This document shows positions 5,317 to 62,348 of a stretch of DNA of 64,000 nt, piece by piece. Location of the stretch: sequence record NC_017972.1; one strand, 5' to 3'. Position 1 is the first letter of the stretch. Every line of letters starts with the position of its first letter. Both the position numbers and the translations under genes were made by a program. The notes beneath the pieces are model-generated. The model ran no database searches. It was not told the DNA's origin and saw nothing but the letters and a program-made list of their open reading frames with translations.

Positions 5317-5326
5317 TATTTACAGT
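5317..5326 (-). promoter_or_regulatory. ACTGTAAATA promoter-like motif upstream of polA
   Basis: recurrent motif, 34 nt before the start codon and just after a terminator. Confidence 0.7.
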
Positions 5327-5338
5327 TTTCGCAGACAC

Positions 5339-5374
5339 AAAAAACCCGCCAGTCCCTAATGAGAAAGGCGGGTT
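5339..5374 (-). terminator. intrinsic terminator
   Basis: AACCCGCC/GGCGGGTT stem followed by a U tract on the minus strand. Confidence 0.8.
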
Positions 5375-5379
5375 AGTCG

Positions 5380-5862
5380 TTAGAACAGACGCACATACCG
5401 ACAGATTTCATCGATACGGTCTTTGCACTCTTGCGGTGTTTCGTAGGCGAAGTGCTGGCGCCCCATCGTCAGCAGTGTTTCACTGGCGAGAGAGCGCACA
5501 CCTAGCTGCGTGTAAACTTCCCAGTTGATAGGAAGTTCATAAAGGCTTTTCGGCCCACCACGCAAAACTACTACGGGTTTGTGTTGGGGAGCCGCGTCGA
5601 TGAATCCCAAAAATCTAGGATGATCTTTCCACAACATCAAAGCGTATTCGGTGTCAGGAATTTCCTGAGTGGAAACGCCGTCGTCCAGCCCGTCAATCCG
5701 TGGTCCCCAAAACTCGCCAGAACCTAGACCGAAAAAGCCGAACAAATCAGACGTAAAGTGACCGGCCACCAATTGCGGGAAATTGGTAGTTAGAATCCGG
5801 TACTCTTTTCCGTTCACCTTGAGGTAGGCGTAGTGAAGCGCGATTTCACTACGCGTCATCAT
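5380..5862 (-). CDS. hypothetical protein
   Basis: 160 aa ORF followed by a terminator. Confidence 0.7.
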   Translation of the reverse strand: MMTRSEIALHYAYLKVNGKEYRILTTNFPQLVAGHFTSDLFGFFGLGSGEFWGPRIDGLDDGVSTQEIPDTEYALMLWKDHPRFLGFIDAAPQHKPVVVLRGGPKSLYELPINWEVYTQLGVRSLASETLLTMGRQHFAYETPQECKDRIDEICRYVRLF

Positions 5863-6226
5863 CGCCGCTTTCCTCGTTTGTTTCGGGGCGCACGCTCACC
5901 GGATTCGGAATCGGATTCGGCGTCGGCGTCACCGGCTTTGGGGCACGGGTACGCGTCTTAATGATTTCTGCCATTTTTTCCGGCGTCATGCTGCGGTGAT
6001 TCAGCAGGCGCTTTCCGTCCCAATACAAACCCTTCGGCAATTTGCCTTTTGGTGCGAATGGCAAACCGTTAGACGGTACGCCCGGAACGTATGCGTCTTC
6101 GCGCTCAAAAGCTTGTTTTGCGCGAATGCTTTCGCCACTCCAAATGCCGTCAATGGCACCCTTGTAAAAACCGAGGAACGCCAGCACGACCTGTTGCGCC
6201 ATCAGTTCTGCTTTACCAGTTTGCAT
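5849..6226 (-). CDS. peptidoglycan-binding-domain (PG_binding_1-like) protein
   Basis: QQVVLAFLGFYKGAIDGIWSGESIRAKQAFE fits the QxxLxxLGY-x-DGxxG-x-FQ pattern; Pro-rich tail. Confidence 0.65.
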   Translation of the reverse strand: MQTGKAELMAQQVVLAFLGFYKGAIDGIWSGESIRAKQAFEREDAYVPGVPSNGLPFAPKGKLPKGLYWDGKRLLNHRSMTPEKMAEIIKTRTRAPKPVTPTPNPIPNPVSVRPETNEESGDDDA

Positions 6227-6268
6227 AAATCCTCCAGTGCTAAATGGGCCTTCCTTGGCCCGTGCTAC

Positions 6269-9200
6269 TTAGCGGGTTTTGTATTTGAAGTTGATTTCGG
6301 TCAACTCTTTGATCGCTTGTTCTTTGTTCGACACAGTGACGTTGCGCGCCACTTCGTTGATCTTGGAACGCAGATCAGTTTTGTTTTTACCGAAATACAT
6401 CCACTCGCCATCACTGCGCTGCCACTTCACACCACCGCCCGGAATTGCTTTGCCAATGTGTTTGACAATGGCTGGGTTAGTGCGAATGTCCACGCAAAGC
6501 ATAACGTGCTCCTCGGTGAAAATCGGGAATACACGAACGGCTTTGCGGTTGCTGCTCATGCGTTTCTGCACGGCAAAGAATGCAGGCAGCTCACTTACCG
6601 GGGCCAGCTCAAGGCTGTACCAAAGTTTGTGAGTGTTTTTCGTACCCGTTTCAAAGGCGCTGTTAAGCTTCTCGAATAGGGTGTTGAAGCGAGTGTCCAC
6701 TTCAAAGTTATCGTAGAACCACTCGTAAATCGTGTGGAACTTTTTCTTGTTGTTGACGGTGATATACGCGTAGGCCGGAGTATGCTTGAAGCCGAATTCT
6801 TTCAGGCTTACTTCCTGCTCGGTTTCCATCATGGCTTCCAGAGTTGCAAAGCCGTGGTAGTACGCCGGGTGCAGAGAAATAGACGCGACTTCTTCGTCTT
6901 CATATTCCAGCTCTTCGTCTTCCACCTCTTCCTGCATAACGCCCATGTTCGGATCGTCGGTCGGCTTGAGTTTCTTGCCGCCGCCAATCTTGATCACGCC
7001 GCCAGTATCGTAGATACCGTCGTTGAGCGGTTTGCCTTTCTTCTCGTTCTCTTCGCGCTTGTCGCCGTCCGCTTTTTCTTTCTTGATGATGCTTACGTCT
7101 TTCTTCTCTTGCGCTTCGCGGATTTTCCGCTCCTTTTCTTCCAGCTCTTCCTGAGCCTTACGCTGTTTCTCCAGACGGATATTGCGCTTGTTGTTCCGTT
7201 CCTCTTCGGTGTTGGTCGCGTCGGTCGAAACGTCGAAGTATTTCGCTTCGTGTTCCGGCGATACCGGGTTAGTAGCCATGTAGCACATGCTAACCGGGAT
7301 GTTTTGACGGGAATCCATACCAGCAGGAGGATTTTTCAGGTTCACAACGATACTGGAAATTTCCTTGCTTCCTTTCTTCTTCAAGCGGAAGCCAACAATT
7401 TTACCAGTACCCCACTCGGTCAGAGCGGGTTTAGTGCGCATCCGGGCAACGTGGTCGGCGGCAAATTCCTTGTCACGCAACAGAACTTCGACGTTTACCA
7501 GACCCCAGTTGTGCGGATCGTTTACCTGCATGTTTGGAACGAACGGACGCATTTCCATTTCTTTCGCGCCAGCCACGTTCGGAGCAGCTTCGATCACAAG
7601 CATTTCTGCTTTGTTTTTCGCACGCATTTCCGCGAATTCTTTCGCTTCCACGGAGTTCAGGGCTTTGTAGTTTGTAACCATGTCGCCGAATGGTTCATCA
7701 CGCAGACCTGCGGTAGTTGCCAGCATTTCGATACTGAGGGAAAGACGGCGATCTTCCTTCTCGGTCAATACTTCGGCATTATTCAACAAGTCTTGATACA
7801 GCGGGTTTGCAGCTTCGGTGATTCGTGCGATACCGAAAGTTTTGGAAATAACGCGAGCAAGTTTTGCAACTTCCATCGTGTTATCAGCCAGTACCCAGTC
7901 GAGGAACACAACGTCACGGGTAAGACCGCCAGTGCCTTTCGCCGCTTCAATTGCGCCCTTAGCGTCTGGTCGCCATACACGGGCTGCGGTTTGGTTCAGT
8001 GCGCCCGGACCCCAAGGGGCTTCGGCACGAATCATACGCGATGCCAATTGCAGGTTGTGACCTTCGGACATGCCCTGTTCGTTGGCGATCAGAATCTGAA
8101 TTTTGTCATCAGTTTTAAACTGGTTAAACATCTTGACTTTATCAGGTTCGTCACCAGTGAACTTCACAGCTTGATCTTTGTAGTTCGGCGGCAACGCATC
8201 GTAAACAGCGGACGCGGAGTGGTTGAAACGGGTGATAATGATCAGCTTGCCGCGAGGCTCAGCTTTCCAATATTCGCTGTTTTCGTCAGGCGGCAGACCG
8301 ATTTGCGAATCCGGCAATTTAACGCGAATTTCGCCGTCGGTGTATTTCCGCGCAACGTACAGCTGCCCGTTGTGCTCGACCAGATCAAGCTCGACGTATT
8401 GCTTATTGCGCTTCCACTGGTCAGGGTTGAAGTGCTTGTGAACGAGGTTAGCGATATACGACGCTTTCCGCGAAACAAAACCTTCGCCCATGTCGCCGAA
8501 TACTTCTTCAAACGCAGGATCGTACTGCGGAGCAATAATCAGACGCTCGAAACGTGCGAGGTGTTTCTCCCACATTTTCTGCGACAGATGCTCGCCAGCA
8601 AAGTCTTCGTCGTTATCCTCAAACTTATTGTCGCCTGCTGGGCCATCGTCTTCGGAGTCCCGGTCAACTTCGCGATCCAGCTCTTTGTTAGCAGCCTTTT
8701 CCGCTTTCTCTTTCTGAATCATCAAGTTTGCAATTTGTTCTGTGGTTTGTTTCAGAACAAGTTTGTACAGCTCTTCGTGCAAACGTTGCTGTTCGATTTC
8801 TGCCGGAGTAGTACCGTCCACGCCGTCGAAGTCCACCATTGGAACCGGGTGGAAACTCTCAATTGCAGACGGCAGCATGTAAGCCCAATCCTTTTTGTTT
8901 TTCACAATAAAGGAAATGTAGTTACTCAGCTTATCCACTGCGCGCTTACCGTTGAGCGGGGTAAACGTACCGATAACACGATCACCGGCTTTTACCACAC
9001 TTTCTTGTGCGTCGGCGTTCGGGTTAATGTTTGCAATGTCGCCAGCACGGAAAACGTGCGGAGCTTTCAGTGCAATTTGACCTTCGATATCCTTTGCACG
9101 GTCAGGCATGATCGTACCGGTCAACAGGCGCAACCATTTAACCGTAGTCGAAGTGGTCAGAGCCTTAACCGCACGGTGACGCGCAGACGTGAAGTTTTTC

Positions 9201-12200
9201 AGGTTGTGCGATTCGTCAATTGCCACGTAGGTCGGAGCAATACGGCGAATCATTTCGAGGTTTTGCGACAGACGAATCTGCGTAGAACCTACGCTGACTT
9301 TTACGGTACGGCCACCGATGAAAGTCATGGAAGTGATGAAAATGGTGTTTGGTGGAGCGGCCAGAGCAGCTTCCATCAGACGTTTTTCGCCCCAACGCTT
9401 GAGCGTACCGGCGGTAATCGGGAACGGGTTCCAGTTAGAGCCGAGGAAATACTTCATTTCATCACACCACGTCGGCACCAGACCGTTCGGGCAGATGATC
9501 AACGGAACCACTTTAGCGCCACCAGCCGCCGCCATATCCTGCATCAGGCAGGTAATGTCGATAACGCCTTGACCGGTTTTACCGCCGCCCGGAGCCACCG
9601 CAATAATTGCGAAGCTTGGCGGATTTTCTTTACGCAGATAACGCTGAATATCTTCTTGGTGCGGGAAGATTGCGCGAGCATCTTTGGTTTCCAGACCGGG
9701 AACCTTGATATCGTCGGCGCTGAAAGATTCGTCGGGTTGAATCGACTTCACTTGCGCTTCCGCTTCCGCGAAAATGGTTTCAGAATTCGGTGCGTATTTG
9801 CCGAGCATCAGGGAGAACGGCAGAACATCACGGAAAATCTGAGTGTTCGTTTGCGGGTGCAGCTGTGGAACGATATGACGCGAACCTTCCTGATCCGGCC
9901 ACGGACCGAAATCGAGGTTTACATCAGCGCCTTTTGCATCCAGCCAGTGCTCTTGCGGAACGCTGTTAATTGCGTCCAGCATTTGCTTGTAAACCTGACC
10001 GCCGAAATAGGTGAACAGTTTCGCGAAATCAGCAGTAGTCGAAGACGACGCACGGAAATAGTTCGGGTGATTTTCCAATTCGTCTTCAACTTCAATCGAA
10101 GTCGGAACGGTGTCGGCAGTTTTCAGCGAATCGTAGGTTTCTTTCCAGATGAAAGTACCTTGCTTGCCCGACGCTGCGTCAACAGCCGCAAAGAACAAAC
10201 TGTTGATAACCGATTGAGGTTCGTGCGAGAACCGTTCGATTACAGTGCCGTCTTCATTCAGGAAAGTTTTGTAACGGGTGAGGGCGTCGTGGCCTTCGGT
10301 CGGCAGTTTGGTGTAACCGAGGTTGCGCATTGCGGCTGCCAAAAGTTCCGGCAATTGCGGAACAATTTTATCACCGTAAGCGACACGCATATACGCACGT
10401 TGCAGACCAACGAAAACTGGCGCATTGGTGAATTTTGTTGCTTCGCCCAGCGAACCGTAAACCATTTCTGCTTGTGCGTAAGCAGCCATAGTGTGGTCAG
10501 GACGGTTAATGGTGAACATCGCTTGCGCAAAAGTACGCTTTACCGGACGCTCGCCTTCCTTCGCCATGTTGTAACCGAGCCAATCCGCAATTGCCAGCGA
10601 ATCAGTGCTAACGGCGCCAACTTGGTGAGTGGTGGTAACGGCGCCAGCAGTTTTACCTGCTACGGCATTCAAACCAAAGTCCCAGTCGTAACCGAGAGTA
10701 CAGCCGTTAAAACCTTCGATTTGAGCACGCAGTTTTTCCAGACGTTCCAATTCCTGCGGATCGACATGCGGCCAGAATGCAGCATACGGCGACCGCATAT
10801 AGGCAGCAACGGTCATTTCGTTGCGAGCGATAATGTCGAGGAATTCGTCCGAAATTCGTTCGTGCTCTTCGGACAGTTTACTTTTGGTCAGAGTTTCCGC
10901 GTCTGGACGAACACTCAGAGTACCGTTGCTCTGAATGAACATACCGTCAGCGTTACCCTTGGTTTTTTCAACCGAGAATCCGTTTTGCGCACGCAGCGCC
11001 GGAATCTTTTTCAGGGTAGAGGCGCTGGTGGTGTAGCGCGGAATGTTTTCGATCTTGATCGCTGCGGTGTTGTGCAGGTCGTAAGTGATCTTGGTTTTCT
11101 TCGCACGCATTACCTGCGAAATGTACACGCTAAACCATGCGTTTGCACGCGACAGGCTAACGGTTTCCGATTCGGCAGATTGCGTAACGAAATGCGCAAT
11201 ATCAGCTTCCAGCGTATAGCGAATTGCAGTGCGCAGGGTAACGTTCAGCAGTTCGGCTTCAAGCGCGATATGCTCAGGATCGTTTATCAGTTCGTTAATG
11301 CGACCGTTAATGGTGTGCGCACCGGCAGCATCATTGGTGGCGGCTTTGCGGGTTTCCCGCGCCAGTTCCTGCACTTTTCTGCTTGGCTGTTTCAGCACTT
11401 CAATTTGCAGGAATTGTTCTGCAAGCGGATTCGCCAAAACCATATCGGTAACAATGTCGCCGCCACTTGGCAGTTTAATGCCGGTGTGTTTCAGCCAGAT
11501 TGCTTCGATATCGGTAAACTTGGTGTCGATTGGAATGCCGCGATGAATCAACCGCTCGCTAACGGCAGTGGTGCCGAACAGGAAAACGTTGATTTCTTTT
11601 GCAGCTTCCAGAATAGCCAAACCTACCGGAGACTGCCAGCGACCACGACGACTATCGTTTACGAAATAGTTGTCTTTTCCACCTTCGCGCAGTTTGTGCT
11701 CAGGGTTGGTGTTTGCGTCTTCTTTACCAAAGAACGGCGCAGGCAAACCTTCTGCCGGGTCTTCACCGTCACCCATCATCACGATATCCAGACCGCCCGG
11801 ATAACGCTTAGAGCGCAGGATGGTATGGAAATCGGTTTCAGGACGGCGCGAAGCACGAACGAAGTTATCTACCTCGGTAAGGATCGATTTCGATTCGCGC
11901 TTGCCTTCAAAAATCTTGACGAAGATTTCCGAAATCAGACGTTCGCGTTGTTCCTCGTTGTAGCTCGACAGAGTGTTCGCGTAGAACATGCAGGCCCGCA
12001 TAAAGCGGAAAAACATGTTTACGTTGGACGTTACGTCGGCCAGCGATTCCAGAACAGGCAGCATGAAATCGCGGCCAGCCTTGGGGAAAAAGAACGATTC
12101 AAATTCGGCGTTACGCGATGGTTCCAGCGATACGGTACGCAGCGCTTTTACAAAGTTGGATGCGGTTTCCGACAAAGAACCTTTGCCTTCGCCGTCACCT

Positions 12201-12331
12201 TCATCGCCTTCGTCTTCCCCGTCGTCTTCATCAGAAGCCGCGAAAGCGTGATACAAATCTTCTTCCATTTCTTGTACTTGACCGCGCACGGCAGCGGCCA
12301 GCGGAGTCTCATTCCAGTTAGCACGTTTCAT
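6269..12331 (-). CDS. giant SNF2-family (SF2) helicase/ATPase, ~2020 aa
   Basis: motif I APGGGKT, Ia CPNGLVPTW, II DESH, III LTGT, V SEGHNLQ, VI QTAARVWR; start moved to 12331, giving an ATGA overlap with the upstream stop and a GAGG RBS. Confidence 0.9.
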   Translation of the reverse strand: MKRANWNETPLAAAVRGQVQEMEEDLYHAFAASDEDDGEDEGDEGDGEGKGSLSETASNFVKALRTVSLEPSRNAEFESFFFPKAGRDFMLPVLESLADVTSNVNMFFRFMRACMFYANTLSSYNEEQRERLISEIFVKIFEGKRESKSILTEVDNFVRASRRPETDFHTILRSKRYPGGLDIVMMGDGEDPAEGLPAPFFGKEDANTNPEHKLREGGKDNYFVNDSRRGRWQSPVGLAILEAAKEINVFLFGTTAVSERLIHRGIPIDTKFTDIEAIWLKHTGIKLPSGGDIVTDMVLANPLAEQFLQIEVLKQPSRKVQELARETRKAATNDAAGAHTINGRINELINDPEHIALEAELLNVTLRTAIRYTLEADIAHFVTQSAESETVSLSRANAWFSVYISQVMRAKKTKITYDLHNTAAIKIENIPRYTTSASTLKKIPALRAQNGFSVEKTKGNADGMFIQSNGTLSVRPDAETLTKSKLSEEHERISDEFLDIIARNEMTVAAYMRSPYAAFWPHVDPQELERLEKLRAQIEGFNGCTLGYDWDFGLNAVAGKTAGAVTTTHQVGAVSTDSLAIADWLGYNMAKEGERPVKRTFAQAMFTINRPDHTMAAYAQAEMVYGSLGEATKFTNAPVFVGLQRAYMRVAYGDKIVPQLPELLAAAMRNLGYTKLPTEGHDALTRYKTFLNEDGTVIERFSHEPQSVINSLFFAAVDAASGKQGTFIWKETYDSLKTADTVPTSIEVEDELENHPNYFRASSSTTADFAKLFTYFGGQVYKQMLDAINSVPQEHWLDAKGADVNLDFGPWPDQEGSRHIVPQLHPQTNTQIFRDVLPFSLMLGKYAPNSETIFAEAEAQVKSIQPDESFSADDIKVPGLETKDARAIFPHQEDIQRYLRKENPPSFAIIAVAPGGGKTGQGVIDITCLMQDMAAAGGAKVVPLIICPNGLVPTWCDEMKYFLGSNWNPFPITAGTLKRWGEKRLMEAALAAPPNTIFITSMTFIGGRTVKVSVGSTQIRLSQNLEMIRRIAPTYVAIDESHNLKNFTSARHRAVKALTTSTTVKWLRLLTGTIMPDRAKDIEGQIALKAPHVFRAGDIANINPNADAQESVVKAGDRVIGTFTPLNGKRAVDKLSNYISFIVKNKKDWAYMLPSAIESFHPVPMVDFDGVDGTTPAEIEQQRLHEELYKLVLKQTTEQIANLMIQKEKAEKAANKELDREVDRDSEDDGPAGDNKFEDNDEDFAGEHLSQKMWEKHLARFERLIIAPQYDPAFEEVFGDMGEGFVSRKASYIANLVHKHFNPDQWKRNKQYVELDLVEHNGQLYVARKYTDGEIRVKLPDSQIGLPPDENSEYWKAEPRGKLIIITRFNHSASAVYDALPPNYKDQAVKFTGDEPDKVKMFNQFKTDDKIQILIANEQGMSEGHNLQLASRMIRAEAPWGPGALNQTAARVWRPDAKGAIEAAKGTGGLTRDVVFLDWVLADNTMEVAKLARVISKTFGIARITEAANPLYQDLLNNAEVLTEKEDRRLSLSIEMLATTAGLRDEPFGDMVTNYKALNSVEAKEFAEMRAKNKAEMLVIEAAPNVAGAKEMEMRPFVPNMQVNDPHNWGLVNVEVLLRDKEFAADHVARMRTKPALTEWGTGKIVGFRLKKKGSKEISSIVVNLKNPPAGMDSRQNIPVSMCYMATNPVSPEHEAKYFDVSTDATNTEEERNNKRNIRLEKQRKAQEELEEKERKIREAQEKKDVSIIKKEKADGDKREENEKKGKPLNDGIYDTGGVIKIGGGKKLKPTDDPNMGVMQEEVEDEELEYEDEEVASISLHPAYYHGFATLEAMMETEQEVSLKEFGFKHTPAYAYITVNNKKKFHTIYEWFYDNFEVDTRFNTLFEKLNSAFETGTKNTHKLWYSLELAPVSELPAFFAVQKRMSSNRKAVRVFPIFTEEHVMLCVDIRTNPAIVKHIGKAIPGGGVKWQRSDGEWMYFGKNKTDLRSKINEVARNVTVSNKEQAIKELTEINFKYKTR

Positions 12332-12744
12332 TCGGAAGCCTCTGAGAAAATTCCACCTTGTTGGATAAGAACGGTCCACACGGAACTCGGTTTGCGTTTG
12401 TGTTCCTGTGCAATTCGCACAAGCGCACGGCAAATCGCTACGCGGACATGTGGGTCGCGTTCATCGCTGAGGGTGTCGGCGGTGTAGTGTGCGTAAAGGT
12501 TATTGTAGATTTGTTTACTGAGCTGTTGATACAGCGCCTCTACCACTTCCTCCATATCGAAGGTAGGCGGTGGCAGTTCAGGAACATAATCGGCGTAACG
12601 TTCCTCGGCCAAATCCTGAATGGTGTTACGCAGGCCTTCAACGATTGGCAAAATTGCCGAAAGTTTTTGGGCAGCGTCCGCATTGCCTTTTTTGATAATT
12701 GCCAAGACAGATTCAACACTGTCTAGCGCGGAACTATGACTCAT
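12328..12744 (-). CDS. hypothetical protein
   Basis: helical ORF; the start at 12744 gives an ATGA overlap with the upstream gene. Confidence 0.7.
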   Translation of the reverse strand: MSHSSALDSVESVLAIIKKGNADAAQKLSAILPIVEGLRNTIQDLAEERYADYVPELPPPTFDMEEVVEALYQQLSKQIYNNLYAHYTADTLSDERDPHVRVAICRALVRIAQEHKRKPSSVWTVLIQQGGIFSEASE

Positions 12745-13427
12745 TGTAAGTCTCCAATAGATGCCCGTCGCCACACGGCAAAGAGGGTTTGTTTTAGATC
12801 AGGATAATTAGGCAGCTCCACGTCGAAATACACTTCGTAGAACAACGCCAAGTTATCGCTTTTTAGTCGAGCGATACTGATTTTGTAGTCGCGCCCTAAT
12901 GCAACGGAAACCTTATCCCATTCTTTAACGTCTCGCACCTTTGACGGGTGGCGATCTTTGTAAACGGTTGTGGCTTTTCCATCCTTTATCGCTCTGCTGG
13001 CAGTAAGCTTTAGGGATTGAGGTACTTCTTTCAGCACCTTGACCGAGGCCATACGCTCCAGCAAATGATTTAAGGAAAACCGTTGCGCTTTCAATCGCGC
13101 ATTGCCGCGCACAATGAAACGTTTAGCGACATTGGTTAAACCGTCGCTTTCGATTTCGATATCAAACGTGTGCTTTTGGGGCACCAGATGGTACAAAAGG
13201 AACTTAGAATGCAAGGCATTGCTAAACTCCGTATACCTCTTATTTACAGAAAAGAAATTGCGCAGGTCGTACAGGCATTTGGTTCGGGAACCAGCCTGAG
13301 TCAGCAAAATGCGAAAGCACTCCGACAAAACCTTTTCATCAAGTTTCTTAGTCGCAGGCAATTCCGTAAAAGCTTCCCACGCTTCTTTGAAGTCGGTGTT
13401 AATGTCGGAGGGTATTTTTCGCTTCAT
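12741..13427 (-). CDS. hypothetical basic protein
   Basis: 228 aa ORF with AT-richer codon usage than its neighbours. Confidence 0.7.
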   Translation of the reverse strand: MKRKIPSDINTDFKEAWEAFTELPATKKLDEKVLSECFRILLTQAGSRTKCLYDLRNFFSVNKRYTEFSNALHSKFLLYHLVPQKHTFDIEIESDGLTNVAKRFIVRGNARLKAQRFSLNHLLERMASVKVLKEVPQSLKLTASRAIKDGKATTVYKDRHPSKVRDVKEWDKVSVALGRDYKISIARLKSDNLALFYEVYFDVELPNYPDLKQTLFAVWRRASIGDLQ

Positions 13428-22093: not shown

Positions 22094-22239
22094 CGGGATG
22101 TTCCTCGATTAAAGGTTTGTTTAGGTTGGCTTTAATCGTAGCGCCACGATGCTAACCAACTTAATCCTAAATTAGTATGTAAAAACAAATACGCTTTTGC
22201 GACCTAACCCGAGGAACCGCCCCAATAACTACCGTTTTA

Positions 22240-23326: not shown

Positions 23327-23336
23327 TATTTACAGT
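23327..23336 (-). promoter_or_regulatory. ACTGTAAATA motif upstream of sbcD
   Basis: 31 nt before the start codon. Confidence 0.7.
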
Positions 23337-28347: not shown

Positions 28348-30452
28348 TTTGGTTCCAGATATTCTCGGATTTCTTTGAGTTGGTTCGCTGCCATGCCCTG
28401 ATGCTCAAAGCGCAGGCGCTCTTCCATCATTTGCAGCGTAACAATCCACGAAGGTTTTACTACGGGCACCGGCAGTTCGGACAAGAACGCCTTTTCACTT
28501 TCAGAGTACACGCGAGGACGATGCACACGCACCGGCTCTTCACTGCGACCGCCGCGATACTCTTCGATCAATTCGCCGTTTTCATTTTCGCGTGGCAATG
28601 CGTCAACGTCGATTCCCAATTCTTCGGCCATGTCGCTGCTCATAATGATAAGTTCCGGTAATTCAGTGGATTCAGATGCTGCCAGAACCTCAGCGAGTTC
28701 TGCGAGTTTTTCGCCAAACTCTTTGCTTACTTCTGGATGCTCGCCAACGCGAACAAAACCGTCGTCTGCTTTGCTTACGTCAGGCAGGCTCGGGTCCAAA
28801 TCTTGCGCAGTGGTCAACCGGTTTTCAGCTACTGCAACTTCTTGCAAAGCTTCTACCAATTTTTCCTCTTCGCCTTCGGTCCAAACGTGCGGTGGTGTAC
28901 CGATTGGTGCAGGCGGTGCGGTAAGGGTAAGCGTGCCGTCTTCCAAACCCTGCTTGAGCTGTTCGACAATTGCAGGATCGACACTCATACTATTTACATT
29001 TTCCAGACCGGCGACTTCGCTAGCGTCACGCTCAGCAATTTCGATCTGTTTTTGCTCTTCCTCTTCGATGCAAGCGACAAGTTCTTTCGACAGCTCGTCG
29101 GACAACAGGTGATCGGCAGGCAGCTCGATTTCCACTACCTGTTTTTCTTCTGCGCGAGGCGGGAAAAGCCACTGCGTTTCAGCGTCGAATTCCGCCAGCT
29201 TAGTCAGGGTCAGCGCGTCGAGAATCTTTTTACGATCCGACAGATTCAGCTGGAATTTTTTCATGAACGCGGAGAAGCGGACGCCAGTGCTGATGAAATC
29301 AACAATGTCCTTGGAATCCAGCTCTTCGATTTGCTTGTACTCTTGCGTCGGGAAAGACGACGGTTTGTGATGCTGGAAATTCTCGGTTTTGTGCGGTTGT
29401 TTGGGCGAATGCTGGAAGCGCCCAAGGTGTTTGCCTTTGCTGATGTTGGCGAGATTACTAAGGTTGTAATCCAGCTCTTTCAGCACAGAGATAATCGTTT
29501 TCGGAGCCAACCGCAGCTCCATCACAACAGCAAGCAAAGAGAAACGATTATTGCGCTCAACGAATTCAGAAACGCGGGCGCGGATTTGATCCGGCTCAAG
29601 CCCAACCACGCGAATCATATACAGCGCTTCTGGATTGTAATCCGCCGTCGGGTCAACAAACTGGCCGTCGTCGTAGCAGATAACGTCATCGCTTTGCACA
29701 ACGTCGTCAAAAACATTCATGAATGCGTTGTAGTCACACTCATGGTCTTTGCAAAGGTCTTCGTAGCAGGATTTCGCGGTGAACGAATCAGTCTGCGCAC
29801 GAATGAAATCAGCAATATCAGAATCGCTAATGTGTTTGCTTTCTGGCTCTGCAACTGGCGCCGGTTCCGACGTAACCGGGATCGGTTTCACAGCTGCACG
29901 CTTGAATGCTTCGCCCGGATTGGCGAGTTCGTAGAACGAATCGATTTTAATCAGCTGTCCAGACTGACAAAGCGCACGCAACGGGCGCGCAACAGAACGC
30001 CCGTCCGTGTGCCCAAGTTTGCCCGCAATCCACGATGCTGTACGACGTTGGCCGTCGTTCATGTAGTACATAATGGATTCTTCGGTAATCACACCGACAC
30101 CAGAACGCGGCGGCAGATCGTCATTGTTTTTCGGCTTCATCGCCTCTTCAATCAATTCTTGCTTACGATCTACCATTGGCTCTACTTCCTGTGTGCTCTG
30201 TTCTGGCTCAGGCAGGCCGTAGGTTTGTGCAACCTCGGCCTGCTCTTTCTTCATGAATTCGTCGCTGATATAAAAACGGTTGTCTTCATTGCAACGAACA
30301 TACATAAGTGATTTTAGGCGTGTCACCGCACGGCTGATTTGCGTGTAAGACGACATGCACATGTCGGTGTAAACGGTAAGAGTACGCCCCGGCGCTTCAA
30401 TGATCGAAAGCAGCAGTGCGGCCTCTAATGCGGACAAGTCTTTCATTATCAA
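28344..30452 (-). CDS. protein with several predicted winged-helix domains and an acidic C-terminus
   Basis: 702 aa; several ~55 aa helix-helix-helix-hairpin segments, e.g. TASWIAGKLGHTDGRSVARPLRALCQSGQLIK. Confidence 0.55.
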   Translation of the reverse strand: MIMKDLSALEAALLLSIIEAPGRTLTVYTDMCMSSYTQISRAVTRLKSLMYVRCNEDNRFYISDEFMKKEQAEVAQTYGLPEPEQSTQEVEPMVDRKQELIEEAMKPKNNDDLPPRSGVGVITEESIMYYMNDGQRRTASWIAGKLGHTDGRSVARPLRALCQSGQLIKIDSFYELANPGEAFKRAAVKPIPVTSEPAPVAEPESKHISDSDIADFIRAQTDSFTAKSCYEDLCKDHECDYNAFMNVFDDVVQSDDVICYDDGQFVDPTADYNPEALYMIRVVGLEPDQIRARVSEFVERNNRFSLLAVVMELRLAPKTIISVLKELDYNLSNLANISKGKHLGRFQHSPKQPHKTENFQHHKPSSFPTQEYKQIEELDSKDIVDFISTGVRFSAFMKKFQLNLSDRKKILDALTLTKLAEFDAETQWLFPPRAEEKQVVEIELPADHLLSDELSKELVACIEEEEQKQIEIAERDASEVAGLENVNSMSVDPAIVEQLKQGLEDGTLTLTAPPAPIGTPPHVWTEGEEEKLVEALQEVAVAENRLTTAQDLDPSLPDVSKADDGFVRVGEHPEVSKEFGEKLAELAEVLAASESTELPELIIMSSDMAEELGIDVDALPRENENGELIEEYRGGRSEEPVRVHRPRVYSESEKAFLSELPVPVVKPSWIVTLQMMEERLRFEHQGMAANQLKEIREYLEPK

Positions 30453-31601: not shown

Positions 31602-31611
31602 TATTTACAGT
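31602..31611 (-). promoter_or_regulatory. ACTGTAAATA motif upstream of dnaX
   Basis: 31 nt before the start codon. Confidence 0.7.
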
Positions 31612-35498: not shown

Positions 35499-35508
35499 TA
35501 TTTACAGT
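35499..35508 (-). promoter_or_regulatory. ACTGTAAATA motif
   Basis: 29 nt before the start at 35469. Confidence 0.7.
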
Positions 35509-37482: not shown

Positions 37483-37491
37483 TATTTACAG
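37483..37491 (-). promoter_or_regulatory. CTGTAAATA motif pointing into the non-coding region
   Basis: matches the recurrent motif; no credible CDS nearby downstream. Confidence 0.5.
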
Positions 37492-40473: not shown

Positions 40474-40550
40474 CTCCTAACCTTTAAATTACAGGCGCGA
40501 AAACCGAGAGTGCGAATAGTAATTCAAAGGTATGTGTTAGGAGAACATCA

Positions 40551-41179: not shown

Positions 41180-41189
41180 AATGTAAATA
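41180..41189 (+). promoter_or_regulatory. AATGTAAATA variant of the promoter-like motif
   Basis: 36 nt before the start at 41226. Confidence 0.55.
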
Positions 41190-44016: not shown

Positions 44017-44026
44017 TATTTACAGT
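44017..44026 (-). promoter_or_regulatory. ACTGTAAATA motif upstream of the primase
   Basis: 30 nt before the start codon and oriented with the only inverted gene in this block. Confidence 0.7.
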
Positions 44027-45989: not shown

Positions 45990-45999
45990 ACTGTAAATA
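45990..45999 (+). promoter_or_regulatory. ACTGTAAATA motif
   Basis: 30 nt before the start at 46030 and right after a terminator. Confidence 0.7.
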
Positions 46000-52216: not shown

Positions 52217-52279
52217 CTGTAAATTCAGGGTAGGTGAACGTGATTTGCCTGCCCTAATTTCAAAATCCGGTACATCGCA

Positions 52280-52946: not shown

Positions 52947-53792
52947 ATGACCCTACTTTCGGTAGACGGCACCAACACGATGCACCGTGCGCACCATGCG
53001 ATACGATACATGGAACACAAAGGGACGCCGACAAATGCCATCGTCGGGTTCTTTAACATTGTGCGTTCTAATTTGAAAATCACTGGCGCCACACACGCCC
53101 TCGCTTCTTTCGACCGCCCCGGCGAAAACTTCCGGCATAAGCTGCACCCGGATTACAAAGGGCATCGGGAAAAGAATCCTGAGAAGAGCGCAGCGCTGGC
53201 GAAACAATTGCCAATCATTTGCGAATTGCTGGATGCTTTGAACTTTCCGTTTTTCGGCAAGCGCGGCATCGAAGCGGATGACGTGATTGGTTCCACCGCC
53301 TACAACTACACGGGCGGATTGGCCTACATCCTGTCGGGTGACAAAGACTTTGCGCAGGAATTGACTGCAAAGCACGTTCGATTGATCAACCCGAACAAAA
53401 AGCTAACCGTTACGCCCAAAATGTGCAAAGACGTTTACGGCGTTCGCCCAAAGCATATGATTGATTTCCTAATGCTGGATGGCGATGAAATCGACGGAAT
53501 CGACGGAATACCCGGCGTTGGCCCGGTAACGGCCATTAAGCTGATTGAAGAGTTCGGAAAGGCGGAAAACATTCCATTGGATCGTTTCCCACCAAAATCA
53601 AAAACTGTAAATATAAAGCAAAGGCTAAAGCTTAATCGAAAGCTTGTAACGATTAGGCATGACCTGTATGATGCGAATATGGAATTGGATTTGTCAATTT
53701 CAGATAGTATCAACACCAAAGCCTTCAAAAAGATTTGTGAGCGATACGGATTGGATAAGCTAAAGCAGTCCGTATTGACGCATGGCTTGTAG
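52947..53792 (+). CDS. 5'-3' exonuclease / flap endonuclease (Pol I 5' nuclease-like)
   Basis: VDG, FD..FRH..YKGHR, EADDVIG, SGDKD, GD..DGIPGVGP helix-hairpin-helix. Confidence 0.92.
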   Translation: MTLLSVDGTNTMHRAHHAIRYMEHKGTPTNAIVGFFNIVRSNLKITGATHALASFDRPGENFRHKLHPDYKGHREKNPEKSAALAKQLPIICELLDALNFPFFGKRGIEADDVIGSTAYNYTGGLAYILSGDKDFAQELTAKHVRLINPNKKLTVTPKMCKDVYGVRPKHMIDFLMLDGDEIDGIDGIPGVGPVTAIKLIEEFGKAENIPLDRFPPKSKTVNIKQRLKLNRKLVTIRHDLYDANMELDLSISDSINTKAFKKICERYGLDKLKQSVLTHGL

Positions 53793-54353: not shown

Positions 54354-54376
54354 GCTTTCTAGCAACTGATAAAGAG

Positions 54377-54404: not shown

Positions 54405-54425
54405 ATTTTCTACACGGGGAATTCC

Positions 54426-55247: not shown

Positions 55248-55259
55248 AGGCCCCATTGG

Positions 55260-55590
55260 CCTACGCGTATGCCCGCCCGCGTATTGAACGGCCTTTGAAC
55301 GGCCCTTATAGATGCCATAGACGTTCAATGCACAAAGCGCTTGACCGTATACAGGCCCTTTGCTACCTTAGAGGCATCCGTGACGGAGTGTGGCCGAAAG
55401 CTTTACACTCACGGATTAGAGGAAGTTTCGGCGGACGGCATCTAAAGCGGCTATGCGCTTAGGTACGTTAGCCATGCCTTTATAGGGTGTGCGCGCCGGA
55501 TTTGGTAAGCCTTATGTGTAACGGGCTTGCTTTGTAGTGCTTCCCGTTATGCAGCAAACTAACCCCCCGGCGAGCTTAGGCCGCTACATC
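55260..55590 (+). ncRNA. candidate structured non-coding RNA or structured leader
   Basis: ~370 nt intergenic gap with several stems, e.g. 55281-55290/55322-55331, 55376-55383/55409-55416, 55519-55525/55543-55549; strand assumed from neighbours. Confidence 0.4.
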
Positions 55591-55621
55591 ACGCTAAATT
55601 TTAAAACTTTGGAGATTCATC

Positions 55622-57472: not shown

Positions 57473-57543
57473 ACACCGCGAATCGGGGCACGGAATAATT
57501 CGCGCCCCAATACGCCCACCACATTAAGATTAGAGGCAATCAC

Positions 57544-58656
57544 ATGAACATTTTTGAACAACTGAAAAACGCCGCTTACCCAGCCCTGCAAACCACCTAT
57601 CGCGAAATCGCGTCGTCTATTTTCAGCACGTCGCCGGATGAACTGAGCGAGTGGCGCGAAGTCGATCCTATCGACGTTGGCTACGATGAAGACGCCGACC
57701 CGATGCACGCTAAGCGTGTGGTTTTCCCACTGTGGGAAATTCTGCCTTACGAATTCCAATCAGAGGCCGTGCATTCTGTTCTGTCCGCGCTGGATTTGGA
57801 ATACGAAACTTTCCATTACACCGCCGACATTCCGGGCTATATCATCGCGTACATTACCAGCGATCCGTTCGACCCTGCTGATATCATCGCTTTCTTTGGC
57901 GACCAAGAAGAGGAAGAGGAAGACGAAGAGCACGAAGAGGAAGAGGACGACGACGATAATCTGATCCCGCAGCGTTCGGGCGAAGTCGTGCGATTGGTTC
58001 CGCCCACTGCTGAATTGCAGCGACATGTCGTAGAAGACGAACCGTTTGACGTTGAAGACGAGCCGCTTGATATCGAAGTCGAACCGCTGCAACCGGAAGT
58101 AGCGACCCAGCCTGAAACCGCACCACAAGCGCCTGTAAGCGAAACCCCGGCCCCTGTCCTTACCGATGTTCGCGAAGTGGCTCAAACCGCACAGGAAGAG
58201 CAACCAGCGCCAGAAGTGCAGGCCGAACCAGCGCCAGAAGTGCAAGCCGAATCAGAGGCCGAACAAGCCTCGGTAATGGACGTGCAACCGGCTGTAGAAC
58301 CAGAACCGCAAAAACCGCAAGGCCCGGTACAAGATGATCCTGAATTGATCGTTGCGCGCCACGCTGAAAAACTGCAATTGCTGCAAGGCCGAGTGCCTAC
58401 CGATGTTCTCACTGAATTCAACGGTGAAAACAATGTTCTTTCGGTTGTGTACGAACGCCCGGTCGGTGCGGATATTTCCGAAGGCACCACCAGCGACGAA
58501 TGCCGTATCACCATGAAAAACGAACCGTTCCCGCCAGTTGGGCCTGTGCGTTTCCTCGATTTCTTCTACATGCACGACATGCAAGGCGATTTGCTGGTGC
58601 GTGCTGCGAGTGAAGACGCCGTGCTGCAAACGCTTGACAATCTGATGGGCAACTAA
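57544..58656 (+). CDS. acidic, Pro/Glu-rich hypothetical protein
   Basis: 370 aa, GAGG RBS; poly-E/D tract and APEVQAE repeats. Confidence 0.75.
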   Translation: MNIFEQLKNAAYPALQTTYREIASSIFSTSPDELSEWREVDPIDVGYDEDADPMHAKRVVFPLWEILPYEFQSEAVHSVLSALDLEYETFHYTADIPGYIIAYITSDPFDPADIIAFFGDQEEEEEDEEHEEEEDDDDNLIPQRSGEVVRLVPPTAELQRHVVEDEPFDVEDEPLDIEVEPLQPEVATQPETAPQAPVSETPAPVLTDVREVAQTAQEEQPAPEVQAEPAPEVQAESEAEQASVMDVQPAVEPEPQKPQGPVQDDPELIVARHAEKLQLLQGRVPTDVLTEFNGENNVLSVVYERPVGADISEGTTSDECRITMKNEPFPPVGPVRFLDFFYMHDMQGDLLVRAASEDAVLQTLDNLMGN

Positions 58657-58679
58657 TCGAAAGCTGCATTAATTAATTC

Positions 58680-58714
58680 GGGGAAGGACCGGGTTTCTGG
58701 TCCCTCCCCTTTTT
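58680..58714 (+). terminator. intrinsic terminator
   Basis: GGGGA.GGACC/GGTCC.TCCCC plus TTTTT. Confidence 0.75.
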
Positions 58715-58732
58715 CGTTTCGGGAAAAACCAC

Positions 58733-59191
58733 ATGACTAACGCCGTAACCCGCGAGCAAAAAATCGAATCCATTGAATCCATTCTGCTGATGCACGCAAA
58801 GGATTTCGCCGGGTTCCAACTCACCACGCATTACTCCGGTCTGCAAGGCCCGCACGTTGCAATCAAAACCTCCCAATACGAAGGCGACGTAACCGTCGAA
58901 TTCAGCGGCTCCGTTGTCCGCTTCGATATCGAAGGTTTCCGCCAGCGCTTCGCTGACACCTCTGCGTTTTTCAATTTCTTCAAGCGCACGCTGCAAGCCC
59001 CTAGCGCAGCCTGTGTTTCCCTCGCCGCCGCGCTCCACGGTAAAACCGCTGGCGTTTGCGTCATTGCCGAGCACAATAAAATCCTTTACATGTTCACCGA
59101 GAAAGAAGGCATGAACAATATGTTTGAGGCCAGCTTCAACAATCAGAAAACTCTGATGGCCTTGACCGATATCATTTCTATTTTCTCCTGA
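58733..59191 (+). CDS. hypothetical protein
   Basis: 152 aa with strong codon bias. Confidence 0.7.
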   Translation: MTNAVTREQKIESIESILLMHAKDFAGFQLTTHYSGLQGPHVAIKTSQYEGDVTVEFSGSVVRFDIEGFRQRFADTSAFFNFFKRTLQAPSAACVSLAAALHGKTAGVCVIAEHNKILYMFTEKEGMNNMFEASFNNQKTLMALTDIISIFS

Positions 59192-59216
59192 TCAAATCGC
59201 GAAAGGAAAATCGGTT

Positions 59217-59495
59217 ATGAACTACGCTACGCTCGCCTCCGCCGTTCTTGGCCTGATGGAGCATCACCCCTATATCATCACCGATAACCCAACGACTGAC
59301 ACCGCATATGATGCGGCGTGCAATTTGAATCGTGCGCTCGACTTGCTGCCCGATGCGTTGCCTTGCCGTGCATTTGCAACTCCCGGCAATACGTTTTTTG
59401 TTATTCGCGTTTCTGAAATCGCAGAGAATATCGACCTGCTCGAAACCCACTGCGACAAACGCCACCTACAAGACATTCAGCAATTTGCGAGCTGA
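59217..59495 (+). CDS. small protein resembling NAD-dependent ligase domain Ia
   Basis: EHHPYIITDNPTTDTAYD matches the LigA HH.Y..D.P..D..YD pattern. Confidence 0.5.
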   Translation: MNYATLASAVLGLMEHHPYIITDNPTTDTAYDAACNLNRALDLLPDALPCRAFATPGNTFFVIRVSEIAENIDLLETHCDKRHLQDIQQFAS

Positions 59496-59498
59496 CCT

Positions 59499-60794
59499 AT
59501 GGAATTGCTAACCGCGATGATTCACCGCTTGTATGAGCGGGGCCACTTGAAAACCTGCAAACCTGCCGAAGATCACACGACCTATTCATACGAATATATG
59601 GGGCGTCTGGTTAAGCAGGCGGTGACGGTGGATGTACGTATGAAACGGACCGAACTACTGCGAATTGTGAACCGCGCTTACAACGGTTCCCCCGAGGACA
59701 TGCACACGCTGGCGATGCTCTACAACACCGGCTATGGCGTGCCCTACGACCGCGAGCGCGCCATTCTCTGGATGCGTTTCGCCACGCAACAAGGCATGTA
59801 CTACGATACGTTCGGCGCAGCGTATCAGCGTGCATTGATCGAAGCACAAAATTGTCCCGAGACGATTTTCCCTGATCCGATTATTTATCCGTGTCTGGAT
59901 ATCATCCAGAAAATTCACGACGTACATAGCGATTCCAAATTGCGGTTAGGCTGCGCCGTGATGCCGCGCCTTGAAGGCATTCGCGTTTATTTGATTTACC
60001 GTCACGTACCGGGCGTAACTCCACACTTGTACGCAGGTTTTTACCACGACGGCGAAAACTATTTCATGGCACTGGATAAGCTGGTTGCTTTGGGTGTGCC
60101 TCGCTATTTCGGCGAGATTCGCGACAAGGTAATCATTACTGACTATGCGCCATTCGGCAATAACACAATGTACGTGGTGGCCGGTACGATTTACGTGCCT
60201 GAGTCCAAACGCGCAGGTCAAACGCATATGGAAGTTTTCAATTCGTTTATGACGGATGATTCCACGCTGCTGACCCGTGCGCATTTCGACATTGAAGACG
60301 ACAAGGCCGCGCTGGAAGAGGCGATTAAAACTGTAAATAAGTTAGAGAGACAGCGAGAACGTTTTGAAGGCGCCAATCGGCCAATGCCCGAGGAAAGCCT
60401 AAAGGCATTGAAGAAAGCAAAGAAACAGCGCCGTCTGCTGCGTGAAACGCTTGCGGTTGCTGATCCTGACGCTGATTACCAGCGTTATTTGGAATCGCGG
60501 CCCGAATCCCGTTTGCGCTTTGTTGCATCTGAGCTGTATCGCTGGAACCGTCGCCTTGGCTTGCATACCGTTCCGATGGGGCGGCAAGGGCAACAGCACC
60601 TATCATCCATTGGCTTTACCAGTCTCGACCATCCAACATTGGAATTCGCCGGTTGGATTGCCGATCATACTGACGTAGCCAAAACTGTAAATATGTATGA
60701 AAGGGCATTAGATGCAAAGGTGAAATCCTTGATTATGTTCCCAGCACCTAATTCTTCTGCTCGTTTCGTTGACGTATCGAGGATTGAACTGTGA
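59499..60794 (+). CDS. Sel1-repeat protein fused to a degenerate NAD-ligase adenylation domain
   Basis: Sel1: LAMLYNTGYGVPYDRERAILWMRFATQQG; ligase motif I-like PRLEGIRVYLIY; motif III-like VVAGTIY. Confidence 0.65.
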   Translation: MELLTAMIHRLYERGHLKTCKPAEDHTTYSYEYMGRLVKQAVTVDVRMKRTELLRIVNRAYNGSPEDMHTLAMLYNTGYGVPYDRERAILWMRFATQQGMYYDTFGAAYQRALIEAQNCPETIFPDPIIYPCLDIIQKIHDVHSDSKLRLGCAVMPRLEGIRVYLIYRHVPGVTPHLYAGFYHDGENYFMALDKLVALGVPRYFGEIRDKVIITDYAPFGNNTMYVVAGTIYVPESKRAGQTHMEVFNSFMTDDSTLLTRAHFDIEDDKAALEEAIKTVNKLERQRERFEGANRPMPEESLKALKKAKKQRRLLRETLAVADPDADYQRYLESRPESRLRFVASELYRWNRRLGLHTVPMGRQGQQHLSSIGFTSLDHPTLEFAGWIADHTDVAKTVNMYERALDAKVKSLIMFPAPNSSARFVDVSRIEL

Positions 60795-61660
60795 GTGACA
60801 CCATTTCGCACGAAGACCGGCAACAACAGCAATTGCATATGCGGCAAAAAGATTTGCCGCCTGCGCAAGAGCCAGAAGTTTTCAATCGTTTGCAAAGCCA
60901 CAACGCTAGCAACAGAAACCTGAAAGGGGAATTCCTGCTCAAGTTGGTGCCGCGTGTGGACGTGGTATTGAGCGCCTGCCTCAATACTGTAAATGATGTA
61001 GTAGACGAACACCGAACGCTGATCATCGGCGGCGAGGAACGTTCGCTCTACCGCCCGCTTTCCCGCAAAGAGCAAGGCGTAGCGATTCAGCCGCTGACTG
61101 ACCTGTATCAATACGTCACCGAAATTGCTGCAAATGAATACGTCGTTTTCGGCACCGACAAAGATCACGCCGAACGCGTAAGCGCTCTAGTTGAATTGCT
61201 GAATCAACATATGAAAGCCAGCTTTGCTGGTAGCGCATATGAAAACGAAAATGGTGATAGCGAATTCGCTATTTCTCAACGTGATTACTTCCAAACCAGC
61301 ATCCACGTTAGCGACGTTGAACGCGGAACTGTAAATGTAGTATATCTGAGCATTCGTGTAATCATTCACGCTGCCAGCCTGACCAAAGGCAACGCCGACC
61401 CGGAAACTGCGGTTAAGAACTTCAACGGTTCGTATCGCACCGTGGTCAAAAACTTTGCGAATGCTACCGGGATTGAAACCGGTGTGCATGTTGCTTTTGA
61501 CGTTTCTAATTTCACTGTACGTCCTCAATTGCTGTCCCTGTTTACCGCACTGTGCGGCGAAGAGCAGACCAGCGTTGAAGCGGTAAACCCTCAACATTAT
61601 CACGGCGCTAACACGTTGGTAAGCGTCGTTCTTTCGACAAAGGCACTGAAAAATGGCTAA
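60791..61660 (+). CDS. hypothetical protein
   Basis: 289 aa, GTG start overlapping the upstream stop. Confidence 0.7.
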   Translation: MSDTISHEDRQQQQLHMRQKDLPPAQEPEVFNRLQSHNASNRNLKGEFLLKLVPRVDVVLSACLNTVNDVVDEHRTLIIGGEERSLYRPLSRKEQGVAIQPLTDLYQYVTEIAANEYVVFGTDKDHAERVSALVELLNQHMKASFAGSAYENENGDSEFAISQRDYFQTSIHVSDVERGTVNVVYLSIRVIIHAASLTKGNADPETAVKNFNGSYRTVVKNFANATGIETGVHVAFDVSNFTVRPQLLSLFTALCGEEQTSVEAVNPQHYHGANTLVSVVLSTKALKNG

Positions 61661-62204
61661 GGCTGACAAAGCTCCAAAATCCAAAGCACGCGGCAAAGTT
61701 TCCAAACTCGACAAGGCTCTGCGTAAGCTGAACGGCACCAGCGCAAAAACCCCATTCACTCTGAAATCCGGTCAGTTCACCGTGACCAGCTACGCGGTCC
61801 AGCCTACCGAAGTTCCGGGCTACCTGATCGACCGTTCGGAAACTCACGTTGTTTACCGCCACAAGAAAACCAGCGCCTCGAAACAAATGGTCGTTTCGGT
61901 ATTCCCGATTGCCCAAGTGCTGGGCCTGCTGGGTGGCAAAGACGGCGGTTCGATTACCGTTCCGCAACGTCGCGCTTTCAACAGCGTAACCGGCACCCTG
62001 AAATTTGAAGGCAGCACCGTAGCCGTCACCGACGAACACGGCGTTGTTTCCTATATCGACCTGTCGAGCGGCGATCACGAAATTCGTGCAGCCGATGCCG
62101 AAGGTTCGCAAGCCTCGGGCCGTGGCGCCAAGGCTGATAAAGGTGACGGCAAGAAGAAAGCCAAAGTCACCGATATCAAAGAAGGCAAAAAGAAAAAAAA
62201 GTAA
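61653..62204 (+). CDS. hypothetical beta-rich protein with Lys-rich termini
   Basis: 183 aa; ends KEGKKKKK. Confidence 0.75.
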   Translation: MAKADKAPKSKARGKVSKLDKALRKLNGTSAKTPFTLKSGQFTVTSYAVQPTEVPGYLIDRSETHVVYRHKKTSASKQMVVSVFPIAQVLGLLGGKDGGSITVPQRRAFNSVTGTLKFEGSTVAVTDEHGVVSYIDLSSGDHEIRAADAEGSQASGRGAKADKGDGKKKAKVTDIKEGKKKKK

Positions 62205-62260
62205 CGAACACTCGTTACGAAGGCGACCTTGACTAAGGTTCTGGTCGCCACCTGCTTAAA

Positions 62261-62348
62261 ACTGTAAATACATAGTAAGAGCGAACGATTCAGCGAAGGC
62301 GCCACTGATAGCCGCCTAGCCGGACACCGCCATACAAAACTGTAAATA
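62261..62348 (+). promoter_or_regulatory. tandem pair of ACTGTAAATA motifs
   Basis: copies at 62261-62270 and 62339-62348 upstream of the acidic protein gene. Confidence 0.7.

Follow-up and report, generated by a model that had tools for sequence, protein, structure and literature searches.

Which signal heads the replication genes of Lu11, a giant phage of Pseudomonas, and by what protein might it be read? The question is raised by a stretch of 64,000 nucleotides (hereafter the window), which in a megablast comparison corresponds, at 100% identity, to bases 62001-126000, plus strand, of the 280,538 bp genome of this phage of P. putida (JQ768459.1 / NC_017972.1). A first-pass annotation, made from the letters of the window, had noticed the recurrent word TGTAAATA and had proposed that it marks a phage-specific, sigma-type promoter resembling the late promoter of T4. 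Our preferred reading, to which we assign a probability of roughly 0.7, is that TGTAAATA is the core of a phage-specific -10-type promoter for non-structural genes and is read by the host core enzyme in conjunction with a phage-encoded sigma-family protein. The Lu11 motif is sound, but it was already known: the depositors' putative promoter mark dates from 2012. The GenBank record JQ768459.1 carries 20 features of 16 nt with the label 'putative middle/late promoter', each of which consists of C-TGTAAATA plus 7 nt. Thus the record marks the same element; it names no factor and does not split middle from late. The Lu11 genome paper is reportedly Adriaenssens et al. 2012, J Virol 86:6369. That paper aside, no open paper was found in which the motif is named or TGTAAAT is paired with jumbo phages. 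What is added here is modest: conservation across a phage family, separation from a late motif and two sigma candidates. Positions below are those of the window unless they are given as genome positions.

The starting point was a list of 15 copies seen by eye. An exhaustive scan of the window returned exactly 15. The eight minus-strand coordinates were exact, whereas the seven plus-strand coordinates were 2 nt too low; the true plus-strand starts are 41182, 45992, 53606, 60332, 60686, 62263 and 62341. Every copy (15/15) is co-oriented with the annotated genes, so that the reported restriction to the transcribed strand stands. As a background we used 100 dinucleotide shuffles of the window. These contained on average 1.29 copies and at most 5, and none of the 100 reached 15. 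The whole Lu11 genome has 40 exact copies, 37 sense and 3 antisense with 1.8 expected, which places TGTAAATA at rank 3 of all sense-strand 8-mers genome-wide. The only words that outrank it on the sense strand belong to an acidic repeat in the coding sequence of the giant gene Lu11_0099. This gene (6269-12433, minus strand) has about 2,000 codons and is rich in an acidic GACGAAGA/GAAGACGA repeat. The repeat is accompanied by a shadow open reading frame of 1,917 codons on the opposite strand; its words dominate the 8-mer statistics of the genome and also head the 8-mer list in Erwinia phage Y3.

Extending the core by its neighbouring bases sharpened the picture. All 44 genomic sites of the form CTGTAAAT(A/G) are co-oriented with genes. 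Twenty-one of them lie wholly in gaps, to which less than 5% of the genome belongs, and the modal spacing to the start codon is 29-36 nt. The intergenic sites often follow directly 3' of a terminator. A position weight matrix (PWM) retrieved 54 sites, all 54 co-oriented, while shuffled genomes gave 0-5. One-mismatch variants of TGTAAATA are rare and mostly co-oriented, the main ones being TGTAAATG and TGTAAATT. The sole antisense CTGTAAAT of the window is at 43732-43740 (plus strand); it reads CTGTAAATT, is located inside the primase gene and has no A-rich flank.

The copies in front of genes were then compared with the annotation of Lu11 and with the whole genomes of the phages HRDY3, PaBG and Y3. 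Seven copies had been placed 29-36 nt before start codons, and the annotated starts confirmed all seven. The statement that the motif heads replication genes was likewise borne out by the upstream copies at polA, sbcD, the clamp loader and the primase. On the minus strand, the copy at 5317..5324 is 34 nt before polA (Lu11_0096) and is kept before polA in HRDY3, Y3 and PaBG; a terminator-like hairpin with a T-run adjoins this core just upstream. The copy at 23327..23334 is 31 nt before the SbcD-like endonuclease gene Lu11_0111 and is kept before its orthologue in Y3 and PaBG. At 31602..31609 the core is 31 nt before the clamp-loader or 'DNA pol III' gene Lu11_0120 (kept in HRDY3 and Y3), and at 35499..35506 it overlaps the end of Lu11_0128, 29 nt before Lu11_0127 (kept in HRDY3). 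A further minus-strand core, 37483..37490, occupies the gap before the small gene Lu11_0129A. These five are annotated in GenBank. The copy at 44017..44024 (minus strand) has no GenBank feature; it is 36 nt before the primase gene Lu11_0137, in a divergent intergenic region of 60 nt, and is kept before the primase in HRDY3 and Y3. On the plus strand, an A-preceded core at 41182..41189, also without a GenBank feature, is 36 nt before Lu11_0134. The annotated core at 45992..45999 is 30 nt before Lu11_0141 and heads an array with topoisomerase genes. Its GenBank feature, 107991..280538 in genome coordinates (window 45991 onward), has a malformed end coordinate and spans 172 kb. Finally, a tandem pair of annotated cores precedes Lu11_0161, at 62263..62270 and at 62341..62348 (plus strand), the second being 48 nt before the gene; the pair is kept in HRDY3.

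In total, nine of the 20 GenBank promoter features fall inside the window. Eight coincide with copies of the first-pass list; the ninth is the one-mismatch variant TGTAAATT at 52218..52225 (plus strand) before Lu11_0149, which that list did not contain. Conversely, seven of the 15 listed copies have no GenBank feature (13241, 28991, 41182, 44017, 53606, 60332 and 60686). The omissions are the copies before the primase and Lu11_0134 plus every intragenic copy. Outside the window, two annotated promoters at genome positions 147953 (plus) and 240975 (minus) have odd contexts. Downstream of one of them are about 230 nt in which no gene is annotated and where a small gene or RNA is possible; the other is followed immediately by a terminator-like hairpin.

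Are the copies within genes more than by-products of coding sequence? The five intragenic copies of the window differ in their flanks. On the minus strand, the copy at 13241..13248 is inside Lu11_0101, in the frame TCT-GTA-AAT and with a weaker upstream flank, TTTTC. The copy at 28991..28998 in Lu11_0119 (minus strand) is preceded by A instead of C and has the lowest PWM score of the 15 (16.3); it may be a weak site or a chance occurrence. The three plus-strand copies have the full flank. These are 53606..53613 inside Lu11_0151 (flank AAAAAC), 197 nt before Lu11_0152; 60332..60339 inside Lu11_0158; and 60686..60693, also inside Lu11_0158, 97 nt before Lu11_0159, where HRDY3 has a copy at an equal distance before the orthologue. 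Lu11_0159 itself contains the variants TGTAAATG at 60988..60995 and CTGTAAATG at 61330..61337 (both plus strand).

The impression that intragenic copies use uncommon codons proved correct: GTA accounts for 19% of the Val codons, AAT for 36% of the Asn codons and ATA for 4% of the Ile codons. Of 20 intragenic CTGTAAATR copies, 19 are in the frame NCT-GTA-AAT (Thr/Ser/Pro-Val-Asn). This frame preference is partly explained by the other two frames, which give a stop codon or a rare Cys codon. The codon choice is a separate matter. In Lu11, [TSPA]-V-N is written in exactly these codons 19 times compared with 1.2 expected (P ~1e-16), about 15 times the prediction from codon usage. The same uncommon codons are in excess in the relatives, with 11 versus 0.3 expected in HRDY3 and 13 versus 2.4 in Y3. 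Therefore, the DNA word itself is under selection within genes. The intragenic copies are probably internal promoters of tightly packed gene arrays. Chance or a codon artefact as the origin of the motif was rejected on the basis of the shuffles, the 8-mer ranking and the rare-codon excess.

Next we aligned the genomic copies. A preceding C and an A-rich flank are common to 33 of the 40. The other seven lack the C; their number matches chance, and all three antisense copies are among them. The 33 C-preceded copies read (A)AAAC-TGTAAATA, followed by a weak A/A/G/T and then by a strongly conserved A 7 nt after the core. The base before this A is T/G; with the T, the A forms a conserved T-A 6-7 nt after the core, and the full element is (A)AAAC-TGTAAAT(A/G)-N5-TA. 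From -60 to -6 relative to the core the alignment held no information content; accordingly, a -35 box is absent. At its fixed distance of 6-7 nt, the T-A agrees with a start of the common kind, with a pyrimidine at -1 and a purine at +1. Judged from this spacing, transcription would begin at the conserved A, 7 nt after the core. In the resulting register TAAAT(A/G) would occupy -12 to -7, TG -14/-13 and an A-rich tract ending in C -19 to -15. The TA at -12/-11 would then be invariant, and position -7 would be A or G, not T.

The strand specificity of the motif and its 29-36 nt to the start codon are also compatible with an element that acts in RNA, i.e. a processing site or the binding site of a translational regulator in 5' leaders. 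The intergenic DNA before polA was informative here. Between Lu11, HRDY3, Y3 and PaBG it has fully diverged except for the block AAA(A/T)-CTGTAAAT. In all four phages this block is directly 3' of a G+C-rich hairpin with a T-run, so that the order is terminator, promoter, gene. Several copies of the motif are placed directly after such terminator-like hairpins, which argues against an RNA element. Others are in short divergent regions, which an upstream transcript could not reach unless a promoter were present, and these regions hold no further promoter-like signal. The genome has three divergent intergenic regions of 60-94 nt. The only motifs in them are outward-facing TGTAAATA or TAATTTA-like words (TAATTTA is described below); a host-type -35/-10 pair was not found in any of the three. 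Genome-wide, a search for host sigma-70 consensus promoters with up to two mismatches gave 17 sites, 10 of them antisense, which is chance level, and none was before the sigma gene described below. In addition, the motif looks like a -10 element, and the TA that would be its start is at the canonical distance. An RNA element is, then, most improbable. The promoter that we favour would act both between genes, in many cases right behind a terminator, and within upstream coding sequence. The genes it would drive serve replication, recombination and nucleotide metabolism, along with many small genes.

The element is not a peculiarity of Lu11. TGTAAATA or CTGTAAAT is the top non-coding 8-mer in Lu11, Y3 and HRDY3; in Y3 it occurs 34 times in sense and 4 times in antisense with 2.4 expected. 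Genes in the relatives were called by a codon-usage caller which reproduced the annotated strand blocks. The shorter word CTGTAAA had sense/antisense counts of 71/1 in HRDY3 and 59/3 in Y3, and both its flank and the A 7 nt downstream are as in Lu11. PaBG has a shorter (weaker) form, (C/G)TGTAAA. Reciprocal-best-hit genes had the upstream motif in common much more frequently than expected by chance (Fisher P = 9e-7 for HRDY3, 1.6e-4 for Y3, 2e-4 for PaBG). Among these cases are polA, sbcD, the clamp loader, the primase, SSB, the tandem pair before Lu11_0161 and one intragenic copy at an identical distance of 99 nt. Further phages were compared by counting the motif against a control word, and three were enriched: Dickeya phage AD1 had 29 versus 3, Yersinia phage fHe-Yen9-02 32 versus 5 and Xanthomonas phage PhiXhv-12 18 versus 4. 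In the P. putida phage Illi-2 the motif is 33 nt before the SSB gene. We also inspected the surroundings of the sigma gene in 46 distinct IMG/VR loci: CTGTAAA had 101 copies on the strand of the genes and 4 on the opposite one, with fixed positions just after the sigma stop codon and, in several clades, also about 40 nt before the sigma start codon.

Which genes carry the element, and which do not? The TGTAAATA class heads polA, sbcD, the clamp loader, the primase, SSB and thyA. The virion blocks lack it; these are the stretch of tail genes from 26 to 48 kb of the genome and that of the baseplate and fibre genes from 175 to 212 kb. A search of the remaining intergenic gaps yielded a second word, TAATTTA. 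It has 20 genomic copies, of which 18 are co-oriented and 15 intergenic, and is without GenBank annotation. TAATTTA is upstream of both tail-sheath genes, an endolysin, the baseplate cluster and genes of the tail-fibre region. It is followed by T-A at a spacing identical to that of the TGTAAATA class, and it recurs in PaBG (as GCTAATTTAC), HRDY3 and Y3. The window holds copies at 15478-15484, 22168-22174 and 40485-40491 (all minus strand) and a variant, TAATTCA, at 40520-40526 (plus strand). In 10-kb bins of the genome the two motifs are largely complementary. Because the virion and lysis genes carry TAATTTA and because the bins are complementary, we assign TGTAAATA to the non-structural or "middle" class. 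TAATTTA is likely the late promoter class. With timing deduced from gene content, the GenBank label "middle/late" can be sharpened for TGTAAATA to middle, not late.

A sigma-type promoter calls for a sigma factor, and one is encoded elsewhere in the genome, as the first-pass annotation had anticipated. Lu11_0170 (genome 129287-130297, plus strand) starts 3.3 kb past the window end. Its Sigma70_r2 match is above the Pfam cut-off (30-33 bits versus 24), it is assigned to phrog_17569, 'RNA polymerase sigma factor', and its family profile matches sigma regions 1.2-2.3 of RpoD/SigA. The AlphaFold model has a mean predicted local distance difference test score (pLDDT) of 76, with a confident N-terminal helical part, a disordered linker at 223-280 and a small C-terminal helical domain. 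The best Foldseek matches of this model are E. coli sigma-70 chains. Homologues occur in 85 phage records, RefSeq labels the family as a sigma factor, and the identity to gp118 of PaBG is 51%. The passages of the PaBG paper covered here describe gp118 as sigma-70-like and gp112 as a possible sigma factor (Evseev et al., 2020; PMC7412058); a promoter motif is not reported in those passages. In all relatives, the SSB and RecA genes follow the sigma-70-family gene. In Erwinia, Dickeya and Yersinia phages the sigma gene is itself preceded, at about 40 nt, by a CTGTAAATA site; this points to autoregulation or to expression with the middle class.

The second candidate is Lu11_0178 (genome 137298-138407, plus strand; window-equivalent 75298-76407), annotated as a hypothetical protein. 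It is the orthologue of PaBG gp112 (32% identity, E 6e-58), and its conservation extends as far as phages of Yersinia, Xanthomonas, P. putida and Burkholderia. Its sequence had no match in Pfam or PDB, and Foldseek returned nothing significant. A full structural scan with the predicted model (pLDDT 79) had as best matches sigma-28, domain 2 of sigma-70, SigE, other extracytoplasmic function (ECF) sigma factors and SigA region 4. Z scores reached 8.1, and sigma factors dominated the matches. On the strength of this model, Lu11_0178 is likely a second sigma-like factor. Two other proteins were dismissed. Lu11_0322 has a weak Sigma70_r4 match below threshold and no PHROG match, and the 'putative transcriptional regulator' Lu11_0140 matched no family.

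Multisubunit and T7-like RNA polymerase families were not detected in Lu11 with Pfam models, the T7-like search having been run without a positive control. Hence the likeliest reader of the promoter is the core enzyme of the host together with a sigma-family protein encoded by the phage. Lu11_0170 would be the clearest candidate for this protein and Lu11_0178 the alternative; for the TGTAAATA class we lean slightly towards Lu11_0170. The presence of two sigma-like proteins alongside two motifs specific to the phage is suggestive of a cascade. The sigma-like gene pair co-occurs in every distant phage compared, where raw TAATTTA counts were uninformative, so that sigma factors and motifs are not discriminated by this comparison.

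Several points weigh against this assignment. The failure to detect an RNA polymerase rests on Pfam models, which can miss divergent phage enzymes. The fold matches of the modelled Lu11_0178 are only middling for a helical protein. Position -7 of the proposed register is A or G, whereas canonical -10 recognition by the sigma-70 family uses T. TAATTTA, with its TAnnnT pattern, is the more canonical -10 element and could be the true target of Lu11_0170. Furthermore, both sigma-like genes are in units headed by the TGTAAATA class, and the motif precedes the sigma gene itself in the clade of Erwinia, Dickeya and Yersinia phages. This leaves two options: either the sigma gene is autoregulated after slight read-through expression, or another, early factor reads TGTAAATA.

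The latter option leads to a different proposal. An early phage protein would redirect the host sigma-70 holoenzyme, much as MotA/AsiA of T4 do, and TGTAAATA would be the activator box at about -30 to -18. The downstream TA would be the start of a weak -10 element, transcripts would begin about 17 nt after the core, and the sigma-like proteins would serve the late TAATTTA promoters. The location of both sigma-like genes behind TGTAAATA would then follow the usual cascade logic, in which a middle product directs late transcription, and it would agree with the more canonical look of TAATTTA. The 29-36 nt to the start codons would still leave a leader of 11-18 nt. The alignment does not favour this arrangement, however. 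Only T and A at +13/+14 are conserved 3' of the core, with no T at the sixth hexamer position and no information further downstream. No canonical TAnnnT hexamer was found 11-13 bp downstream of the box, where T-A alone is conserved, and for this reason a MotA-type middle promoter is unlikely. A MotA-type TGCTT box is absent. T-then-A at its fixed 7 nt suits a start site with a pyrimidine at -1 and a purine at +1, and the same geometry is seen at TAATTTA. We consider an activator box unlikely, and retain the -10-type promoter read by a phage sigma factor.

The comparisons invite a wider reading, which we offer tentatively and whose parts are meant jointly. A large clade of jumbo phages without RNA polymerase might use the core enzyme of the host for a conserved cascade made up of two sigma factors and two promoter classes. 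Its members would be Lu11, HRDY3, PaBG and the Erwinia, Dickeya and Yersinia phages; Xanthomonas and P. putida phages may belong to it. Both promoter classes would be -10-only with the same start-site geometry. CTGTAAAT(A/G) would be read by a divergent sigma factor that accepts a purine at -7 and needs the adjacent upstream TG and the A-tract. In some members this factor would activate its own gene, and the motif would have remained almost unchanged while the sigma factor diverged to 24-37% identity. For Lu11, the prediction of 2012 is confirmed and extended by un-annotated sites before the primase and Lu11_0134 and by about 20 sites embedded in coding sequence. This provides a compact, testable promoter code for widespread giant phages of plant and soil bacteria, which may be used to annotate transcription units and to build phage-inducible reporters in Pseudomonas and Erwinia. 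It also raises the question of how a divergent sigma factor reads a -10 element without the usual T at -7. As to distribution, contigs with positions 58001-64000 of the window were found in metagenomes of wastewater, food, aquatic and compost samples. A search of sequencing runs for the phage gave no RNA run; its best matches were metagenome DNA contigs. Reads of four metagenome DNA runs, three of them from wastewater or food, contained relatives about 95-99.8% identical; therefore, Lu11-like phages are widespread.

How does the Lu11 element compare with known systems? The late promoter of T4, TATAAATA, is a -10-only element recognised by gp55, together with gp33 and the gp45 clamp. The likeness is evident: both elements are 8 nt long, A/T-rich and -10-only, the Lu11 core is one base off TATAAATA, and in Lu11, too, the host core enzyme with a phage sigma-type protein would read it. 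TATAAATA itself occurs once in the window, beside the primase promoter. Lu11 also encodes a sliding clamp (Lu11_0094), which a T4-type system with a gp55-type sigma factor, a gp33-type co-activator and activation by the clamp would need. Yet the clamp is annotated as bacterial beta-type, not gp45-type, in the part of the PaBG paper covered (PMC7412058). The element heads replication and other non-structural genes, while that of T4 heads virion genes, and it has an extra upstream AAAAC flank. A homologue of T4 gp55 was not found in the Lu11 genome at E<=10, and in profile comparisons gp55 matched neither sigma-like family (hhalign probability <1%). The candidate Lu11_0170 has 336 residues with recognisable regions 1.2-2.3. 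Membership in the T4 late system was rejected because a gp55 homologue is missing and non-virion genes are served; we give it next to no credence. Of the original proposal, a phage-specific -10-type promoter without a -35 element stands, whereas the analogy to gp55 is a resemblance only.

A further parallel is found in phage-encoded sigma cascades that act on the host RNA polymerase, such as those of Bacillus phage SPO1 (gp28 and gp33/34) and of phiEco32 (gp36). In the view of a 2026 review, jumbo phages that have no RNA polymerase possess homologues of sigma factors for their phage-specific promoters (PMC13282480). The Lu11 group differs from these cascades in its motif sequences and in that both promoter classes appear to be -10-only with an identical spacing to the TA start. 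It shares with them a layout: a phage without a detectable polymerase, one or two sigma-like proteins and separate promoter classes for non-structural and virion genes.

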